Source: Podarcis filfolensis (Eukaryota). From it: a stretch of 64,000 nucleotides of DNA. Where the stretch lies: the NCBI GenBank assembly GCA_964270895.1, contig OZ185453.1. The stretch is one strand, 5' to 3'. Shown piece by piece: positions 54,636-63,931 of this stretch. Every line of letters begins with the position of its first letter. Position 1 is the first letter of the stretch. The notes below the pieces were generated by a model. That model had not been told where the DNA came from. It worked only from the letters and a program-made list of their open reading frames with translations, and did not search any database. Made by a program: the position numbers and the translations under genes.

Positions 54636-55009
54636 CTCAGTTGGTAGAGCATGAGACTCTTAATCTCAGGGCCGTGAGTTCGAGCCGCACGTGAGGTAAA
54701 AGATTCCTGCTTTGCAGGGAGTTGGACTAGATGATGAAGAAGAGTTTGGATTTGATATCCCGTTTTATCACTACCCTAAGGAGTCTCAAAGCAGCTAACA
54801 ATCTCCTTTTCCCTTCCTCCCTCACAACAAACACTCTGTGAGGTGAGTGAGGCTGAGAGACTTCAGAGAAGTGTGACTGGCCCAAGGTCACCCAGCAGCT
54901 GCATGTGGAGGAGCGGGGATGCAAACCCGGTTCACCAGATTACGAGTCCACTGTTCTTAACCACTATACCATGATCCTTGTGGCCCCTTCGTACTCTATG
55001 ATTCTATGA
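54636..55009 (+). mobile_element. tRNA-Lys(CTT)-derived SINE with CR1-type tail, interrupted by another SINE
   Basis: Head ctcagttggtagagcatgagactcttaatctcaggg.cgtgagttcgagcc closely matches tRNA-Lys. The body gttggactagatgat resumes at 54971 and ends ctctatgattctatga. Confidence 0.8.
54731..54970 (-). mobile_element. CORE/L2-tail-type squamate SINE (Squam3-like), nested
   Basis: Reverse complement reads ggtatagtggttaag (A box), gggtttgcatccc (B box), tgggtgaccttgggccagtcac core and a (TTC) tail. ATGAT is duplicated at 54731-54735 and 54971-54975. Confidence 0.8.
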
Positions 55010-55264
55010 AGCCCTAAACCATCAGCATCTCAAAGGCATCTCAAATATTCCTCCCCTTCTCCCTTACTGATTTTTTGATAGGAACTCCAACCCAGGATCC
55101 ACGAACTCTTTAATTTAAAACCCTCTGTTCTCATTTCCTACTGAAGCTGATCAGCAAGTGCCCATGAGCAAGCAATTAAGTTATAGAAAAGACAGTCACC
55201 TCTTAACTTGACGCAATAAGGCCAATAGCGTTTTCTCTCTAGAAAGCACCAATATTGGACTTAC

Positions 55265-55343
55265 CTTCTAGAGAAGATGCTACACTGAGGATGCATGCCA
55301 TCCACAGCCAAACCATCCTCGTGGATCTTCTCTTCCCTCTCAT
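55265..55343 (-). CDS. EPHB6: EphB5/EPHB6-type receptor, first coding exon, CDS part (MRGKRRSTRMVWLWMACILSVASSLE; signal peptide)
   Basis: Donor AAG|GTAAGT at 55264. Hydrophobic signal-peptide core ending SSLE, similar to recalled chicken ...GMDWLWLVCFFHLVTSLE. An in-frame TGA lies upstream. The start could instead be the second ATG (55316). Confidence 0.85.
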
Positions 55344-55457
55344 GATGGCGTTAGGATCCGTGTAGCTTCTTCAGAGCTTCCCGCATCTTCCATAAGTCAC
55401 AACTGCCTCTCAGCACATGTTCCAAATGGACCAGGGGGCCTGCAGATCTACATGCAT
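55340..55457 (-). promoter_or_regulatory. Cluster of upstream ATGs/uORFs in the receptor 5' UTR
   Basis: ATGs at 55457 (15 aa, stop 55410), 55453 (ATG-TAG), 55418, 55393 (17 aa, TGA overlaps the main ATG) and 55386 (11 aa, stop 55351). Confidence 0.6.
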
Positions 55458-55469
55458 AGGCAGCTCCAC
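55344..55469 (-). other. EPHB6: 5' UTR part of the first coding exon (internal exon, so further non-coding exons lie upstream)
   Basis: Pyrimidine tract plus acceptor tctctctcctttcag|GTGGAG at 55470-55471. Whole exon is 55265-55469 (205 bp). Confidence 0.7.
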
Positions 55470-55524
55470 CTGAAAGGAGAGAGACGGCAAAAAAAAAAGT
55501 CTTGGCTGAAAGAAACCACTGCAC

Positions 55525-55765
55525 CAAAAATAGGAATGGGAGTTAAATGGCTGAAAGGGGATTAGACAAATTTGTGGGAGACAGACTAATCAATGGCTAT
55601 TAGCCACTGTAACTAAATGGAACCTCCATGTTCAGCAGCAGAATATCAATGAATAACAGCTGCTAAGGGACCAGCATGGCAGGATGCTGCCCTGCTTTAA
55701 GCTTCCAAAAAGCATCTGGTGGGACACAGCTGGAAACAGAATGCTAGAACTCTTGGCTTGGTCCA
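55525..55765 (+). mobile_element. Degraded CR1 3' fragment
   Basis: aaaggggattagacaaatttgtggg...tcaatggctattagccac...gcatctggtgggacac...tggtccagcaaggct. Confidence 0.6.
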
Positions 55766-55873
55766 GCAAGGCTTTTCATCTTAAACCAGCCACTTCTTGT
55801 TCCAATTATTTCAGCACGGTTTGCTGTTCTTAACAATAGCCAAAGTGAGGGAAGAATCCATATTGAGCGACCT

Positions 55874-56338
55874 GGACTTCCGGGTTAGCGCCATCACCTA
55901 ATGGCGGATTCCCTCCGAGCTCCGGAGGGAATCGGCTCAGTAGGGGATGGGTCCTGCCGCGGCGGCGACGCGGGGACCCTCAGAAACCACAGGCGCTGAA
56001 GCCTGTGGACCTGGTGACTCGGCGGGCACCATTTGCGCCCCCCCGACCCGCGAAGGAGCCTTTTTAAAGGCTTCGGAACGGGGGACGGGGAGCGGCACGG
56101 TGCTGTGAGTCGACTGCTTCCCCTACGGAGTGAAGCCGCGTGCCATGGTCGGAGAGCGCTGACTTCTTCCTTTGAACATTTGGACTAAAAGTAACAACCC
56201 GTGAGTAATATGGAAACTGGACTTAAAATTTCTCTTTTGGATTAGGCACGATCGGGGAAGGCGCAAAGAGGAAGTCCGTCTCCCCGCCTTGTAAACATTT
56301 TAAAGCAAGGACTAGATAACTAAGGTTGAGAGAACACC
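55874..56338 (+). mobile_element. 5' part of an L1-related non-autonomous element, interrupted by the full-length L1
   Basis: Starts GGACTTCCGG like the inner L1 and is colinear with its first ~330 nt (ACCACAGG..CCTGTGG, AGTGAAGCCGCGT, ACAACCCGTGAGTAA). Ends at the left TSD copy. Confidence 0.8.
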
Positions 56339-57387
56339 GGACTTCCGGAGGCGGCGCGACCGGTAATGGCTGCCTTCTCCGAGTAAGGAGAAGGGAGCTC
56401 CGCTGTAAACGGGTCGTCCGCTACGGCGAAGCGGAGACCCATTCAGGAAAACCACAGGTGGCAGAAGCCTGTGGTCTCGGGACCCGGCGGGCGCCAGAAG
56501 CAGCCCCCAAAACGCTGAAGGGACCCCGTAAGGGGCTCCGGATCGCGGAGGGGGTAGCGGCGCTGTGGGTCGTTGCGCAAACAGCGAAGTGAAGCCGCGT
56601 TGCTGTTGCCGGTCAGCGCTGTCCTTTCTTCCTGCAACTTTTCTGAACTTTGGAAACTACAACCCGTGAGTAAATTTGGACATTGAAAACTTTCTGAAAC
56701 TTTTGTCAACTTTCTGAAACTTTTTGAGAACTTTATGAAACTTTTAAAACTTTTTTAAAAAGTTGAAATCTGGCTGAAAACGGAGTGAGGATAAGCAGGA
56801 AGCCCATCTCCCGCTATACTGAACTTTAAGCAAAGAGCAGGAGGAGTGGAGACAAAAAGTTATGCGTTAACTAAATGCTGGCACCCTGTTAAAGCAGTTT
56901 TCTGAGTGAAAGACTTTGAGCTATTGACTTTTGCTGGTCATATTCGGGGTGCATTGATATCCTTCTTCTGTGGCACCAGTGGATTATAAAATAAATAAGA
57001 ATCTCTGGTGCTGGAGCTGCCTGGATGAGCACCAGTTTGCAACTTTGGATACATTGAATTCAGGTTTTGAAACATTCTGAGTTGGAACTGGATACTTTGA
57101 AACTGTTGCAGTCAAGGCACTGTAAGAAACACTGTTTTGCTTTAAGTTTTACTCTGCTAAAAATAATACATTGTGGAGGCGATAGACATGGATTTAAATT
57201 TATAAGTTTAACTTGGATTTGATCTTTTCCCTGAAGACGTATTAAGCTCCCTCTAGAGGATTTTGGACTTACAGCAGTGACTTTGTTTTACTTTCCCTTT
57301 CCCGGCCTCTGTTTGACTATTGTATCTGGGACTCTGCTTTCTCATGGGAACAACTTGGATTGACCTTGGATTACAGATAACTTTGGA

Positions 57388-58422
57388 ATGAGTGGCGCAA
57401 GGAGAAGAGGAAGGACTAAACAAACAACTCTAACTTTATCTGCAGCCTCACAGCGTAGATCTTCTGTGCCGGCCTTGCCTTCCACTTTGCCTCCAGACAT
57501 AGAGGCGGCCTCCCTAATACAGGCAGGGGAGGGTGAGACAGAGGAGCTGCACCTGGGAGATATGGCTTCAGGGACAAGTAGCTCTGTCTTGGAGAAAATT
57601 TTGGAGAAACTGGAGGCTCTGGACAAGAAGGCTGATTTGCATACAGCTAAAATTGAACAGAACACAGAAAGCTTGAATAAGCTGACTGGACAAGTTGCAC
57701 AGAATGCCCAGTCTATTGGAGAATTAAAGGAGGCTGTAGGTGAAAATCGTAAACTGGCTGAAGATACTAGTCAAAGATTGGAAGAACTTGAGAAAGAAGT
57801 AAGACCACTCAGCAAACAAGTTGGAGAACATCAGATTTACTTTTTGATGACAGAACTGCGAAACAGGGAGACCAACTTGAGGATACGGTCAATACCAGAG
57901 GTGGAAGAAGATAATTTTATTGAATTTCTAACTAAGGAATTTGCCAAGTTTTGGAAGTTAGAGGAAAAAGACTTTAAAATTGTATCTGCTTTCAGGCTTG
58001 GCAGAGTCAGAAGGACAGAGAAGCCCAGAGATTGTTTGATAACACTGAGATCAAAGGAGGAAAGGGACAAGATTTTGGGCCTGCACTACGAAAAGTCACT
58101 AGACATTTTGGGCAAGAGAATTGAAATCTACAAGGACATTCCTAAGCAGTTGCTGGACCTTAGATCTAACTACACGGAATTGGCAAGACTGTTGAGAAGC
58201 AACGCAATTATCTTCAGGTGGGAGTTTCCACAAGGATTATCCTTTACCTACAGAGGGAGAAAGATCAAAATCAAAACAGTGGAAGATAGAGACAAGTTTT
58301 TGGGAGCACACGGAGAAGACCTCCACAAAGGACTTGGATTGCCAGCGCCAGAACTTCCAGGGGAGCCCGCCCCCTCGGATCCTCAAGGACCGGAGAACAA
58401 GGTACCACCCCAGAAAGAATAA
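57388..58422 (+). CDS. L1 ORF1p (344 aa; coiled coil, RRM, CTD)
   Basis: Heptad-rich N-half, RRM start motif RETNLRIRSIPE, and C-terminal DIP...RWEFPQGLSF typical of vertebrate L1 ORF1. A 15-bp spacer precedes ORF2. Confidence 0.93.
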   Translation: MSGARRRGRTKQTTLTLSAASQRRSSVPALPSTLPPDIEAASLIQAGEGETEELHLGDMASGTSSSVLEKILEKLEALDKKADLHTAKIEQNTESLNKLTGQVAQNAQSIGELKEAVGENRKLAEDTSQRLEELEKEVRPLSKQVGEHQIYFLMTELRNRETNLRIRSIPEVEEDNFIEFLTKEFAKFWKLEEKDFKIVSAFRLGRVRRTEKPRDCLITLRSKEERDKILGLHYEKSLDILGKRIEIYKDIPKQLLDLRSNYTELARLLRSNAIIFRWEFPQGLSFTYRGRKIKIKTVEDRDKFLGAHGEDLHKGLGLPAPELPGEPAPSDPQGPENKVPPQKE

Positions 58423-58437
58423 CCAGACCTATCCAGG

Positions 58438-61400
58438 ATGTCTCTGCAGCTTTTGAGCTGGAACATAAATGGCTGTAACAGTCCCGAAAAAAGGTCTAAA
58501 ATTTTTCATATTTTAAAAAAGGAACAATTGGACATTATATGCTTACAAGAAACACATGTGATTAGGCTCCATAGAAAGGTGTTAATAAATAAAAGGCTTG
58601 GTCAAGAATTTATATCATCGGATACAGTTAAAAAGAGAGGTGTAGTGATCTATGCAAAAGAGAGCCTTTCACCAAAATTTCTCTTTAAAGATGAAAGTGG
58701 AAGAATCCTCGCAATAGAAGTACAGTATCAAGGAGAAAAAATTTTGATATTAGGAATTTATGCTCCAAATGAAGGAAAATCGGATTTTTATAAGAAGTTG
58801 CACGAGACCATGCTGGATTATCTGGATTACAACAACGTCATCATGATGGGGGACATGAACGGGGTCGTATCAACAAATATGGATAAGTCACAGAACCAGA
58901 ACATTACTAAAGAGGGAAGACTACCTAAGACCTTTTTTGAAATGACTGACAATATGGACTGGGTTGACATCTGGAGAGTTAGAAACCCCCTGGGAAGAGA
59001 AGGAACATTCTTTTCTGAAGCTCAACTGACTTGGACACGAATCGACCAAATATGGATAACTAGAAGTCTGGCACCTAAGGTGAGGAAGGTGGAAATCTGC
59101 CCCAAAACATGCTCCGACCATAACGCCTTGAGAATGGATATGACATTGATCCCAATCGGCTCCTTTAGATGGAAGATGAATGATGGCCTGTTTAGAGACC
59201 AAAGAATTGTAAAGAAGGCCCAAAAAACCTTAAAGGACTATTTTGAGATTAATTTGAACACTACGGTGGAAAAAAGAACTATCTGGGATGCAAGTAAAGC
59301 TGTGATGAGAGGGTTCTTGATTCAACAGAATTCCTTAAAGAAAAGACTGCAAAATGAAAAGAAAGATAAAATTCTGGAAAGTATCAAAGAGTTGGAGAAG
59401 AAGTTAAGATCTAACCCGAAGTCCCAACCGATTCTGAGAGAAATTAAACTTTATCAGGCGCAATATTCCAAGCTGATAAATCAGGAAATAGAATGGAAGA
59501 TTAAAACAATGAAACAAAAAACTTTTGAATCGGCAAATAAATGTGGGAAACTGCTAGCTTGGCAGTTGAAAAGGAGACAAAGATTAAATACAGTAACAAA
59601 CTTAGAGGTTGAAGGAAGGAACATTCAGAACCCGGGAGAGATTAGAAAGTGCTTCCAGAGGTATTTTAAAAAGTTATATACTCAAGGGCCACAAGATGAA
59701 ATAGAGATTACACAATTTTTGGAGAGAAATGGATTAGCAAAGCTGTCAGAAGAAAATAGAACAATTTTAAATGGCAAAATAACACGACAAGAGATTGAAC
59801 AGGCCATCCTGAGTCTGAAACAGGGCAAATCACCAGGGCCAGATGGACTGACCTCTAACTACTATAAGACATTGAAGGATTATTTGATACAACCTTTGTT
59901 GGAGGTCAGTAATGAAATAATGGAGGGGAAGAAGGCGCCTGAATCGTGGAAAGAAGCATTTATCACATTGATTCCAAAGTCAGAAACTGAAAAGACACAA
60001 CTCAAGAATTACCGTCCCATCTCCCTTTTAAATGTGGATTACAAAATATTTGCAGATGTTTTGGCACGAAGATTTAAGAAAGTTTTAAGTGAGATAATCC
60101 ATAAAGACCAGGCAGGCTTTCTCCCGGGCAGACATATGTTTACTAACACAAGGAACATCATAGACATATTGGAACTTTTACAAACAAACATAAACACTAA
60201 AGCAGTTTTAATTTTTATAGACGCGGAGAAAGCCTTTGACAACATATCTTGGAAATTTATGAAGGGGAATTTAAAAGAAATGGGAGTGGGACGGGGGTTT
60301 GAGAACGGGATTGAGGCAATATATTCAGAACAAAAGGCTAAACTGATAGTTAACAATGTGGTTACAGAAGAGTTTAAAATTGAAAAAGGTACACGACAAG
60401 GCTGCCCGATTTCCCCATTACTGTTTATTTCGGTTCTGGAAGTGCTCCTGAATATGATTAGGGGGGACCGGTTGGTGGAAGGGATTCAGGTCGGAGCGAA
60501 ACAATATAAACTTAAAGCTTTTGCAGATGACCTAGTTCTGACATTACAGGAGCCGGAGTCTAGTTTGAAAAGAGTACTACAACTGATTCAAAACTTTGGT
60601 CGAGTGGCAGGATTTAAGTTAAATAAGCAAAAAACTAAAGTTTTGGGGAAAAACGTGACAGATATTGAGTTGGAACAGCTTCAGAAAGAGACAGAACTAA
60701 ATGTGGTTAAAAAAGTTAAATACCTAGGGGTAAACATAACAGCAAAAAATCTGAGTTTATTTAAAGATAATTATGAAAAATGTTGGTCAGAGATTAAGAG
60801 AGACTTGGATAGCTGGTCAAGACTAAAACTTTCTTTGTTAGGCCGAATAGCTGCCATCAAGATGAATGTATTGCCAAAAATGTTATTTTTGTTTCAGACA
60901 CTGCAGATTGTAGACAAGACAGAGTGCTTCCGGAAGTGGCAGAAAGATATTTCTAAATTTGTCTGGCAGGGCAAAAAGCCCAGAATCAAATTTAAAATAT
61001 TAACAGATGCGAAAGAAAGAGGGGGCTTTGCCCTGCCAGATTTAAAGTTGTATTATGAAGCTGCAGCTTTCTGCTGGTTAAAAGATTGGTTACTTCTTGA
61101 AGATACGGATGTCTTGGATTTGGAAGGTTTTAATAATGCGTTTGGATGGCACGCATATTTATGGTATGATAAAGCTAAGATAAATAAGGCCTTCAAGAAC
61201 CATATTGTCAGAAAATCAGTTTTTAATGTCTGGACAAAATATAAAGACTTACTGGAGAATAAAACTCCGAGGTGGCTGTCACCCCTGGAGGCTAAGGCTC
61301 GGAAAAGAGCCAATATGGAGGCCAACTGGCCAAAATATTGGGAGATAATAGAAAAGGATGGTGACAACTGGAAATTGCAGAGTTTAGAAAAGATGAGAGA

Positions 61401-62178
61401 CAAAGTGCGAGACTGGTTACACTATGCTCAGATTAAAGAAGTGTTTAAAAATGACAAAAAGCTAGGATTCCAAGTGGAAAAGTCAAAGTTAGAAACTGAA
61501 CTGTTAGAACCTAAGACTAAGGTACTTTCAAGAATGTATAACTTGCTGCTGAAATGGAACACACATGACGAAATGGTAAAATCAACAATGATAAAATGGG
61601 CGCAGGATATTGGGTATAATATTATGTTTGAAGATTGGGAAAGGTTGTGGACCTCTGGGCTGAACTTCACTGCATGTAATGCGTTGAAGGAAAATGTGAT
61701 GAAAATGATGTATAGATGGTACATGACCCCTGTTAAACTGGCTAAAATATACCATTCGTCTGATAGCAAATGTTGGAAATGTAAGGAAAATGAAGGAACA
61801 TTTTTTCACCTCTGGTGGACCTGCCCTAGAGTGAAGGCCTTTTGGGAGAAGATATATAATGAATTAAAAAAGGTGTTTAAATACACCTTTACTAAGAAAT
61901 CAGAGGCCTTTCTCCTGGGTATTGTCGGCCAGAGTGTGTTAAAAAAGGACAGAACATTCTTTTTGTACGCAACAACAGCAGCAAGAATATTAATTGCCAA
62001 GAATTGGAAAACTCAGGAGCTACCCACTGTGGAAGAATGGCAGATGCAACTGATGGACTATATGCAATTAGCCGAGATGACCGGCAGAATTCGAGACCAG
62101 GGAGAAGAAAGGATGGAAGAAGACTGGAGGAAATTTAAGATTTATTTACAAAAATATTGTAATTTGGCTGAGTGCTGA
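58438..62178 (+). CDS. L1 ORF2p (1246 aa; APE endonuclease, reverse transcriptase, CCHC zinc knuckle)
   Basis: EN motifs SWNINGCN, LQETH, GDMN, SDH. RT motifs PGPDG, YRPISLLNVDYKIF, QAGFLPGR, DAEKAFD, GTRQGCPISPLLF, FADD, KYLG. C-terminal CWKC...FHLWWTC. Confidence 0.97.
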   Translation: MSLQLLSWNINGCNSPEKRSKIFHILKKEQLDIICLQETHVIRLHRKVLINKRLGQEFISSDTVKKRGVVIYAKESLSPKFLFKDESGRILAIEVQYQGEKILILGIYAPNEGKSDFYKKLHETMLDYLDYNNVIMMGDMNGVVSTNMDKSQNQNITKEGRLPKTFFEMTDNMDWVDIWRVRNPLGREGTFFSEAQLTWTRIDQIWITRSLAPKVRKVEICPKTCSDHNALRMDMTLIPIGSFRWKMNDGLFRDQRIVKKAQKTLKDYFEINLNTTVEKRTIWDASKAVMRGFLIQQNSLKKRLQNEKKDKILESIKELEKKLRSNPKSQPILREIKLYQAQYSKLINQEIEWKIKTMKQKTFESANKCGKLLAWQLKRRQRLNTVTNLEVEGRNIQNPGEIRKCFQRYFKKLYTQGPQDEIEITQFLERNGLAKLSEENRTILNGKITRQEIEQAILSLKQGKSPGPDGLTSNYYKTLKDYLIQPLLEVSNEIMEGKKAPESWKEAFITLIPKSETEKTQLKNYRPISLLNVDYKIFADVLARRFKKVLSEIIHKDQAGFLPGRHMFTNTRNIIDILELLQTNINTKAVLIFIDAEKAFDNISWKFMKGNLKEMGVGRGFENGIEAIYSEQKAKLIVNNVVTEEFKIEKGTRQGCPISPLLFISVLEVLLNMIRGDRLVEGIQVGAKQYKLKAFADDLVLTLQEPESSLKRVLQLIQNFGRVAGFKLNKQKTKVLGKNVTDIELEQLQKETELNVVKKVKYLGVNITAKNLSLFKDNYEKCWSEIKRDLDSWSRLKLSLLGRIAAIKMNVLPKMLFLFQTLQIVDKTECFRKWQKDISKFVWQGKKPRIKFKILTDAKERGGFALPDLKLYYEAAAFCWLKDWLLLEDTDVLDLEGFNNAFGWHAYLWYDKAKINKAFKNHIVRKSVFNVWTKYKDLLENKTPRWLSPLEAKARKRANMEANWPKYWEIIEKDGDNWKLQSLEKMRDKVRDWLHYAQIKEVFKNDKKLGFQVEKSKLETELLEPKTKVLSRMYNLLLKWNTHDEMVKSTMIKWAQDIGYNIMFEDWERLWTSGLNFTACNALKENVMKMMYRWYMTPVKLAKIYHSSDSKCWKCKENEGTFFHLWWTCPRVKAFWEKIYNELKKVFKYTFTKKSEAFLLGIVGQSVLKKDRTFFLYATTAARILIAKNWKTQELPTVEEWQMQLMDYMQLAEMTGRIRDQGEERMEEDWRKFKIYLQKYCNLAEC

Positions 62179-62453
62179 ATTGGATGCCAGTGCAGACAAT
62201 TGTCTACCATTAAATTAGATTTAAGGCTGAATTATATGTCAAACCAAATTAAGATTATTAATTAAGATGAGTTAAATGATAATTTGTTTGAAATTAATTT
62301 AATAATGATGTAAGTGTATGCGGGAGGTGTGGGGGAGTCCCATGTAACAATTGAGAGATGTTAAATGGACAATGATAAGTGGTGCTTATCTAATATATGC
62401 TTTATTTGAAAACTTCAATAAATATATTATAAAAAAAAAAAAGAGAGAACACC

Positions 62454-63931
62454 TTCTTCTTTAGTGGATAAAAGCAATTAATTTCACGTTTTGGCAGTAT
62501 AAGCGATTTTGCTGGAGGATAAGAGTTAACTTTGAGAGTGGAACTGTCACCCCTCCCCCCAGGACCCGGGAGCGATCCGTGAGAGAGCCTGTTGAAGAGA
62601 CATAGAAGATTTTGACAGCTGTCAAACTAGCTGTCAAAGCTGGGGGAAAAAGAGAGAACTTTGTTTCTGTTGTCTTTGCTGGTTATATTTGTTACATTCA
62701 GGTAATAAATTGTTGAAAACAAAGAGAAAAAGCTAATTTGACTTTTGGATTGGAACTGGAAGGAATACTAAGTAACCAGAACTCCTCTAGAGGGGGTTCT
62801 GGGACATTACAAGAATGGCTGCAAGTGGAAAAATACTGACTGAACTGGAGAGGGTTTTCTTTCTCTTGGGAAAGTTACAAGAACAGAGTAATGTTTTGGA
62901 TACAAATGTCACAACATTGAATGAAACAGTAAATAAACTTACTGAATCTGGAAGGGACTTGACTCAAGTCTTTGCATCTGAACAAAAAGTTTTTGTAGCT
63001 GAACTAAAAATCTTTGCAGCTGAACAAGAAAAGAAATCTGAGAAATTTGAGAAAGTGGGGAAAGAGATATATGATGATTTGGAGGGAAAGGAAGGAGGAG
63101 CTACAATGCCGCAGATGATTAAGGAGAGCCAGAGGCCTGTTAAGATGGATATAAAGGAAAATAAGAACGGGATCATGAAAATCTGGTTTGAATTGAAGAA
63201 TGAGGAATGGAGAGATCTCCTCATGTGGAGATCTGAAGACCTATGGATTACAAAATTGACTAAAGTGGAAGCTGGAGTTTTTGGGACATTTGGACTTAAA
63301 AGAAGTAAGAAACAAGATTTGGGCTACACTTTTAAATATGGAGGTCTGGCTGGAAGAAACATGGACCTTATTGGGACAGAGCTTCTCCGAGATTTGGTGT
63401 CCAATACAAAGGACTATCAAAAAAACCGGCAGAGAGGAATTGAGAGAGAATTAAGAGCCTCGGACGTGAGGTCACCAGGCTGACAGCAGATAGACTGATG
63501 GACATTTGTTGGGGAACCGGGAAACCGGGAAAGGCGGGGAGTGGGGCTTTGGGAATCCAAAGGGTGTACAATTATATTTTGTTTCTTTGTATTCTGTTTT
63601 GCTACTTATATAAAAATGGGGAATTCGTGAAAGGGAATTGGGGTCGACCTTAGAAAAAGATATTAAGAATAAGTACTGACGTATAAAGACTGAGGTTTAT
63701 GTTAAAATTGGTTAACTAAAATGAATTAAATATAATAAGGTAAAATTTGGGGATAAGAACTTGCTGAACTAAAAATTGAACTGGAATACAAGAAGGGGAG
63801 GTGTGGGGAAGTCAGGGAAATATGTTATTGAAAGTAAGGAATGCAAATTCTATGTGTGTGCGTTTTTTTTTAACTTTTCTTTTGTTTTTTCTCTATTTTT
63901 TGAAAATTCCAATAAATATCTTTTAAAAAAA
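62454..63931 (+). mobile_element. 3' part of the L1-related non-autonomous element (rest of 5' UTR, one ORF, 3' UTR, poly-A signal, short A tail)
   Basis: Resumes after the right TSD copy. The 3' end (GGGAGGTGTGGGGAAGTC at 63796-63813, TTGAAAATTCCAATAAATAT, A7) mirrors the inner L1 3' end. No ORF2 motifs are visible and no flanking TSD was found. Confidence 0.7.
62815..63483 (+). CDS. 222-aa ORF1-like coiled-coil protein of the non-autonomous element (no recognisable RRM/CTD)
   Basis: ATG-initiated open frame. LERVFFLLGKLQEQSNVLDTNVTTLNETVNKLT aligns without gaps to inner ORF1p LEKILEKLEALDKKADLHTAKIEQNTESLNKLT (9/33 identical, hydrophobic positions mostly conserved). Confidence 0.6.
   Translation: MAASGKILTELERVFFLLGKLQEQSNVLDTNVTTLNETVNKLTESGRDLTQVFASEQKVFVAELKIFAAEQEKKSEKFEKVGKEIYDDLEGKEGGATMPQMIKESQRPVKMDIKENKNGIMKIWFELKNEEWRDLLMWRSEDLWITKLTKVEAGVFGTFGLKRSKKQDLGYTFKYGGLAGRNMDLIGTELLRDLVSNTKDYQKNRQRGIERELRASDVRSPG

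Follow-up and report, generated by a model that had tools for sequence, protein, structure and literature searches.

Evidence for a conserved, folded RNA leader at the 5′ ends of divergent lizard L1 retrotransposons

In L1, the best-studied vertebrate retrotransposon, the 5′ untranslated region (5′UTR) is regarded as a promoter whose evolution proceeds by replacement; we know of no conserved RNA fold described for it. A 64,000-nucleotide stretch of the Podarcis filfolensis genome (contig OZ185453.1 of assembly GCA_964270895.1; hereafter the window) raises the question of whether an L1 5′ end can also be kept as a folded RNA. The window holds an intact, full-length L1 (element B, 56339–62442, plus strand) nested in the 5′UTR of an outer element (A). 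The two align from their first base and both open with GGACTTCCGG, and a first-pass annotation of the window had proposed that their first ~240 nt, although strongly diverged, keep the same series of helices as a selected structure in RNA or single-stranded DNA (ssDNA). We asked whether such a structure is supported across families, on which strand it would form, and what it might do. The comparison points to a closed, multi-branched RNA domain, predicted to span about +9 to +292 of the element and common to all eight families compared.

Since two sequences cannot establish covariation, relatives were fetched through homologues of open reading frame 1 (ORF1). The eight families were A, B, two drawn from the genome of Podarcis lilfordi (L001 and L002) and four from Logan contigs (L005, L010, L013 and L014); L003 is a near-duplicate of L005, and L011 was paired with L010. 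All belong to one lizard lineage. Several are represented by a single copy in the genome, and the private mutations of such copies lower the pairing percentages given below. The ORF1 proteins of the other families are 38–55% identical to that of B. Their 5′UTRs, 825–1115 nt long in the families compared, can be aligned across families: the first 340 nt are 55–78% identical between families, and mean pairwise identity is 62% over the first 300 nt versus 37% over the remainder. A profile search with 17 ORF1 proteins gave no new useful family matches; the ORF2-anchored contigs L015/L017 and L016 stop short of the 5′ end and are not in the set; and L018, the sole match of a metagenome scan with a three-block motif, was rejected as a chance hit in a high-GC, glycine-rich bacterial gene. 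We relied on two alignments, a structure-blind one made with MAFFT and one made with a covariance model (R1; 297 positions, 78 pairs). A structure-weighted aligner of our own led to the same verdict with one stem (P2, below) mis-registered, and was not relied on.

Taken singly, the 5′ ends of A and B fold better than dinucleotide shuffles of themselves (z = −5.43 and −4.23, respectively), none of 100 shuffles being as good in either case. RNAalifold applied to the MAFFT alignment gave 67 consensus pairs, 29 of which are changed on both sides yet still paired. For comparison, alignment columns were shuffled 200 times within conservation and gap classes, which keeps the lineage pattern of each column, and the structure was re-predicted each time. 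The alifold energy was −83.4 versus −33.4 ± 4.2 in the shuffles (z = −11.9), and doubly changed pairs numbered 34 against a shuffle mean of 8.1 and maximum of 18. R1 recovers all nine full 5′ ends at 232–289 bits, with no other match in the 64-kb window. In its alignment, 92.9% of cells at paired positions hold standard pairs, compared to 85.6% in 500 letter shuffles and 39–46% when the partners are slid by 1–3 columns. Both sides are changed in 34 of the 78 pairs (15.0 ± 2.4 in letter shuffles, 0/500 as high; 6–11 when slid), and the covariation score is 0.355 (0.213 in letter shuffles, 0/500 as high; 0.08–0.12 when slid). At least one doubly changed pair is present in 10 of 11 helix segments, the exception being the 3-bp inner segment of helix H2. 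The compensatory substitutions keep the fold across at least eight L1 families, and we read this sequence comparison as indicating that base pairing itself is under selection. The proposal of a selected structure common to divergent L1 5′ ends is thus supported, the multi-family covariation lying far beyond that of column-shuffled or GC-rich sequence.

Could the helices nevertheless reflect a CpG-island promoter with no RNA function, that is, GC-richness, CpG decay or an alignment fitted to the structure? The domain occupies the 5′ CpG island and is conserved better than any other part of the 5′UTR, with a GC content of 0.58–0.65 and a CpG observed/expected ratio of 0.81–1.09, hence around 1, in the first 300 nt, versus a ratio of 0.14–0.49 for the rest of the 5′UTR taken whole. 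It also carries invariant transcription factor (TF)-like motifs, and 26 of the 36 covarying pairs are of the transition type that CpG decay can mimic. However, dinucleotide, column and letter shuffles and slid partners all fall far short of the observed values, and stems with spans of 85–280 nt do not correspond to palindromic TF sites. There are three times as many G-U as A-C cells (66 versus 22) where random deamination predicts equal numbers, 10 of the covarying pairs involve transversions, and the structure-blind MAFFT alignment yields the same counts as the fitted one. Given the column shuffles, the G-U to A-C ratio and the transversions, we judged CpG decay insufficient as the source of the covariation, and we give very little credence to an account without RNA function.

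The same G-U excess bears on the strand, which had been left as either RNA or ssDNA. Together with the weaker fold of the reverse complement (alifold energy −65.8, versus −83.4 for the forward strand), it indicates that the structured strand is the sense strand, most simply RNA. A structure selected in ssDNA at integration, in the cDNA or the second strand, could for example aid completion of the 5′ end, as the first-pass annotation had raised, and sense-strand DNA also permits G-T wobbles. First-strand cDNA is antisense, however: the 66 G-U cells become C-A mismatches there, and folding of the reverse complement is less favourable by 18 kcal/mol, so that minus-strand cDNA is disfavoured. Sense-strand DNA, for its part, is not known to us to persist unpaired. 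Formation in ssDNA is therefore very improbable in our assessment. We hold with high confidence that the 5′ end forms a real, selected sense-strand RNA structure, and we consider it likely that this structure also serves some cis-acting RNA function.

In the predicted fold, stem P1 closes the domain, hairpin H1 and stem P2 lie inside it, and P2 encloses a four-way junction at which H2 and H3 meet a rod composed of H4, P5 and H5 (Table 1). Nucleotides 1 to about 8–11 are unpaired in the consensus. The five helices H1–H5 first proposed were all confirmed at their proposed positions in both A and B; P1, P2 and the inner stem P5 had been overlooked, and the unit, first put at ~240 nt, extends to ~290 nt once these closing stems P1 and P2 are included. 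Most of eight independent minimum-free-energy (MFE) folds give the same helix set, with P2 absent from the fold of B and H4 absent from those of L002 and L005.

Support is spread over the whole domain. P1 (helices 1–2) has 19 pairs, 4 of them changed on both sides, with 90–96% of cells paired. Both sides are changed in 7/9 pairs of H1 (helix 3) and in 8/11 pairs of P2 (helix 4; 95.5% paired), where one pair reads AU in four cases, GC in three and UA in one. For H2 (helix 5), both sides are changed in 3/6 outer pairs. Its 7-nt loop is closed by G-C in A and by U-A in at least five other families, B among them (none is listed for L014), in agreement with what had been reported for both copies; this covariation is carried by the register of the single-sequence folds. 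H2 appears in every single-sequence MFE fold bar that of L002, in which it returns in a second-pass, consensus-constrained alignment. H3 (helix 7) has both sides changed in 4/8 pairs, with 95.3% paired. Its CCACAGG/CCUGUGG stem is indeed present in A and B as first described, where it is invariant, and it covaries only when the other families are added. Contig snippets of other copies provide additional compensated variants of H2 and H3. In H4 (helices 8–9), both sides are changed in 5/11 pairs and 96–100% are paired; the two double compensatory changes noted between A and B hold, as does the GNRA loop (GUAA) of H5 in B. H5 is deleted in L014.

A further contact may link the H2 loop to the P2/P1 junction GAAGCCGCG. 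The pairing of CGGC with GCCG extends over 4–6 bp in seven of the eight families and is broken in the decayed copy L002; in L014 both sides have changed, giving CAGC with GCUG. On these grounds we tentatively propose a pseudoknot. Separately, the heptamer UGAAGCC occurs twice per domain in most families, on the H3 loop's 3′ side and at the P2/P1 junction (55996–56002 and 56130–56136 in A), and may be a protein-binding or DNA motif.

Table 1. Positions in the window of the leader domain with its predicted helices and motifs, and of the two elements. Offsets with a plus sign count from the first base of the element; MFE, minimum free energy; aa, amino acids.
Feature	Element A	Element B	Strand	Remarks
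Structured leader domain	55874-56171	56339-56631	+	A: R1 269.4 bits, model positions 1-297, MFE -161.5 kcal/mol, z -5.43; B: full R1 match, 275.9 bits, MFE -157.5 kcal/mol, z -4.23
P1	55882-55906/56141-56165	56347-56370/56602-56627	+	~+9-34 with ~+268-292
H1 hairpin	55907-55917/55923-55933	56373-56380/56387-56394	+	
P2	55935-55947/56119-56131	56397-56407/56580-56590	+	~+62-74 with ~+246-258
H2 hairpin	55949-55961/55969-55979	56411-56422/56430-56440	+	7-nt loop NCGGCGA
H3 hairpin	55987-56008	56451-56475	+	CCACAGG/CCUGUGG in A and B
H4 stem	56015-56030/56099-56112	56481-56495/56559-56571	+	conserved internal loop GGCGG / UGN
P5	within 56034-56097	56500-56508/56550-56558	+	C-run with G-run, encloses H5; helices 10-11
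H5 terminal hairpin	56055-56074	56520-56539	+	loop UUUA in A, GUAA (GNRA) in B
Candidate pseudoknot	55962-55966/56135-56139	56424-56427/56594-56597	+	H2 loop with P2/P1 junction GAAGCCGCG
CTTCCGG, ETS-like	55877-55883	56342-56348	+	+4-10; 8/8 families
YY1-core-like motif	55900-55907	56365-56372	+	+27-34; AATGGCGG in A, AATGGCTG in B; AATGGC (+27-32) invariant, 8/8
GTGAGTA, 5′ splice-site-like	56201-56207	56666-56672	+	~+326, ~35 nt past the domain
A, 5′ part	55874-56338		+	broken off by B at 56338
A, remainder	62454-63930		+	rest of 5′UTR, single 222-aa ORF (62815-63483), L1-like 3′ end
B 5′UTR		56339-57387	+	
B ORF1		57388-58422	+	344 aa
B ORF2		58438-62178	+	1246 aa; endonuclease and reverse-transcriptase domains
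B poly(A)		62431-62442	+	
Target-site duplication of B		upstream copy 56328-56338; downstream copy 62443-62453		GAGAGAACACC, 11 bp

Pairing does not explain all of the conservation. Four motifs that it leaves unexplained are invariant or nearly so: CTTCCGG, which we take to resemble an ETS site; AATGGC, presumably similar to the YY1 core, a YY1 site near the start being typical of mammalian L1; the H2 loop CGGCGA; and the P2/P1 junction GAAGCCGC. The element start GGACTTCCGG is found in five of the eight families, the first three bases varying in L001, L013 and L014 (in the row of the near-duplicate L003, the first six bases read T). The P1 strand that contains AATGGC is fixed and its partner shifts only in wobble-compatible ways (UG 5 / UA 3; GC 4 / GU 3), which is what a dual DNA and RNA constraint predicts. 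One DNA segment would thus answer to two demands, with a TF-like motif held on one strand of a stem and wobble-compatible change allowed on the other. From these ETS-like and YY1-like sites, the DNA of the domain is probably an internal promoter.

The coding potential of the leaders was also considered. No conserved sense ORF was found, stops being present in every sense frame of the leader. The invariant ATG of the YY1-like motif opens an upstream ORF (uORF; window positions 55900–55944 in A) that ends in or just past H1 in most families and is mostly 5–14 codons long (27 in L013, longer in L005). The motif alone probably accounts for it. On the antisense strand, open stretches of 72–115 codons occur in all eight leaders (56443–56709, minus strand, in B), with a frame that shifts between families. 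An antisense ORF0-like gene was rejected, as most of these stretches have no Met and only short segments of them can be aligned, even for closely related families (24 residues between B and L010); they are a by-product of purine skew or base composition.

What might the RNA do? Full-length insertions presumably end where the RNA begins, which would place the domain at +9 to +292 in the transcript. The DNA of the first ~300 bp would act as the internal promoter, and the RNA would be a cis-acting leader. Our preferred reading is that this leader could serve as a scaffold for proteins, in the manner of a retroviral leader or the R2 5′ RNA, tagging full-length sense L1 RNA and determining what becomes of it through assembly of ribonucleoprotein particles (RNPs) with the element's own proteins, with host factors or with both; the conserved H2 loop and junction might then be recognition or tertiary-contact surfaces. 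Element A keeps the whole domain, although it is without ORF2. This role in RNP assembly or as a fate signal, drawn by analogy, is a tentative proposal that we hold with clear reservations.

Processing had been offered as another role. A self-cleaving ribozyme of the hepatitis delta virus (HDV)-like type could trim read-through transcripts to the first base of the element, with precedents in the non-LTR elements (those without long terminal repeats) R2, L1Tc and RTE, and the domain begins near nt 1 and may hold a pseudoknot. In HDV-like ribozymes, however, P1 begins right at the site of cleavage and forms part of a nested double pseudoknot, whereas nt 1–8 (to 11) are unpaired in the consensus here. 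A search of Rfam 15 gave no relevant family, ribozymes of the HDV, drz and CPEB3 types included, in window positions 55000–58000 (E up to 10) or in L005, L010, L013 and L014 (E up to 1). The best matches inside the leaders reached 19–22 bits, versus gathering scores of 42–94, and lie in a repeat tract or in H5; weak matches to 'bantam' and 'MIR1435' were dismissed as chance, both falling in the AAACTTT repeat tract of B. The promoter-type 5′ terminus, common to Anolis and zebrafish L1, in turn suggests that initiation rather than cleavage defines the end. Cleavage is thus without support, and a ribozyme appears highly improbable.

Control of translation is an alternative of a different kind, in which the domain would be part of an internal ribosome entry site (IRES), a platform for shunting or a cap-proximal brake on ORF1 translation. 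In its size of ~290 nt, multi-way junctions, conserved loops and possible pseudoknot, it is similar to the domains of viral IRESs. The 5′ end lies only ~8 nt from the stable P1, and a stable stem near the cap should hinder cap-dependent loading of the 43S complex. The 0.8–1.1-kb 5′UTRs also contain 1–9 upstream ATGs, which would be awkward for plain scanning. The ORF1 start, however, lies 530–820 nt downstream, across an AT-rich stretch of only 37% identity, whereas an IRES normally abuts its start codon, and the uORF that shunting would need ahead of the stem is absent. We regard a translational role as rather unlikely.

A location right at the beginning of the transcript and inside the CpG island would also suit a co-transcriptional or RNA-survival element. 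Acting together with the GTGAGTA motif, and by analogy with TAR or a constitutive transport element, such an element might recruit factors for elongation, for suppression of premature polyadenylation, or for export and stability of unspliced RNA. The 5′ splice-site-like GTGAGTA follows the domain in seven of the eight families (A, B, L001, L005, L010, L013 and L014), within a poorly conserved stretch, and reads GTGAATA in the decayed L002; lizard L1 ORFs are, moreover, reported to have many potential premature poly(A) signals (PMC5381506). On the other side, the argument is entirely one of analogy, and the splicing evidence amounts to one low-depth joint: a contig of run X2 joins 56665 to 56763 exactly at the GTGAGTA donor, with GT..AG ends and 97 nt skipped. 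No such joint was found in the DNA-type run X19. The joint might reflect a small intron, or else variation in the DNA length of the repeat tract at 56683–56754. We assign the co-transcriptional or RNA-survival role a low probability. The tract itself is a tandem repeat specific to B (unit ~10/20 nt, AAACTTT-type, 3.5–7 copies) that adjoins the splice-site-like motif and is absent from A.

To return to the folded leader as a scaffold for RNP assembly, several points weigh against it or limit it. The structure is a prediction, and the comparison behind it covers eight families of one lizard lineage, several as single copies with private mutations. For the inner part of H2, the register of the alifold consensus gives 3 bp, that of the single-sequence folds 5 bp and a 7-nt loop, and the pseudoknot amounts to one covariation event. 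As the domain overlaps the promoter, some of its sequence conservation arises at the DNA level. Nothing discriminates RNP assembly from translation control, export and stability, or co-transcriptional roles. All runs with the region consist of assembled contigs whose library type is not stated, which give no reliable evidence on transcript start, strand, level or splicing; contigs L005, L010 and L011, which begin at element nt 1–2, were rejected as transcripts, as assembly graphs also break at repeat boundaries. Finally, mammalian L1 does without a conserved 5′ structure.

The locus itself accounts for how two such leaders came to lie side by side. The 11-bp target duplication flanking B shows that B inserted inside the 5′UTR of A. 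Contigs of run X19 pass from 56338 straight into the sequence of 62454, showing that copies of A without B exist, and many contigs have differing flanks just before 55873–55875, which marks 55874 as a true element boundary. A is a short, ~1.9-kb, L1-ended element with an intact 222-aa ORF, whose N-terminal part shows, over 87 aa, a weak likeness to the coiled coil of ORF1 (28%, E 0.009); the exact protein is absent from the public gene index searched. The best protein matches are from Podarcis, ORF2 being 90% identical to a P. muralis protein, as fits a lacertid host. As a side observation, three Podarcis muralis models (P0018, P0019 and P0142), annotated as a TRIM39-like E3 ligase or vomeronasal type-2 receptor, contain stretches 47–53% identical to L1 ORF1 that span 44–58% of its length; they represent either pieces of L1 that became exons or chimeric annotations.

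How far does the module reach, and what would it mean? A broader conjecture, possible but doubtful, is that squamate L1s, and perhaps fish L1s with the GGACTTCCGG terminus, carry an ancient 5′ RNA module that must be recognized by their own proteins or by host factors for productive retrotransposition. If true, constraint at the RNA level, and not only a missing arms race, would explain why lizard L1 5′UTRs are never replaced while mammalian ones are, and the need for the module would explain its retention in ORF2-less parasites such as A. Dozens of compensatory changes that preserve a leader of ~290 nt would imply an RNA-level step of the L1 life cycle that is hidden in mammalian models, and such a leader offers a concrete explanation for the published puzzle of conserved non-mammalian L1 5′UTRs. 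In practice, the covariance model can be used to locate full-length L1 5′ ends in reptile genomes.

The closest known system is clade 1 of Anolis L1, described by Boissinot and Sookdeo in 2016 (PMC5381506). Its 5′UTRs are likewise long (~1.3 kb on average) and alignable across divergent families, have a 5′ CpG island, and are most conserved in the first ~120 bp, starting with GACTTCCGG and followed within ~20 nt by ATGGCG; the CTTCCGG-type terminus of the present elements matches that of Anolis and zebrafish L1 in the same study. Judged by its sequence, the present element is a member of this lizard-type (clade 1-type) 5′UTR family. A second CpG island, located 300–400 bp downstream in Anolis (PMC5381506), has no sign in B, where the GC content between the domain and ORF1 is 0.37–0.44 in sliding windows (B only). 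That study ascribes the conservation to an absent arms race with repressors, and examined RNA folding only for the spacer between ORF1 and ORF2. What was published is thus sequence conservation over ~120 bp, whereas we describe ~78 compensated base pairs over ~290 nt. Full-text literature searches on L1 UTR structure and covariation returned no report of a conserved 5′ RNA fold in vertebrate L1, but a human L1 mini-ribozyme, 3′UTR stem-loops and spliced L1 copies. Within the scope of these searches, the first-pass claim of novelty stands for the structured RNA domain and not for the conservation of lizard L1 5′-end sequence, which was already known.

Among other non-LTR elements, the R2 5′ RNA and the HDV-like ribozymes of R2, L1Tc and RTE are also structured, covarying, cis-acting RNAs at the 5′ end of the transcript. 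They share no sequence or covariance-model similarity with the present domain, which belongs to the L1 clade with its own RNA polymerase II promoter, and while the 5′ RNA of R2 forms a protein-binding pseudoknot, protein binding by the present leader would be an analogy. A retroviral 5′ leader (TAR, primer-binding site, dimerisation and packaging signals) similarly places a ~300-nt multi-branched structure at the start of the RNA, followed by a 5′ splice-site motif; this likeness too is an analogy only, with no homology and no primer-binding site. The human L1 5′UTR has in common with the lizard leader a CpG-island internal promoter, an ATGGCG near the start and donor-like sites, in its case a YY1 site at +13–21 (the mammalian site is given as CAAGATGGC in PMC5381506) and splice donors that give rise to spliced integrated retrotransposed elements (SpIREs; PMC5860796). 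Mammalian L1 5′UTRs, however, are often replaced and have no common fold, whereas in the lizard families one predicted fold is kept across elements whose ORF1 proteins are only 38–55% identical.

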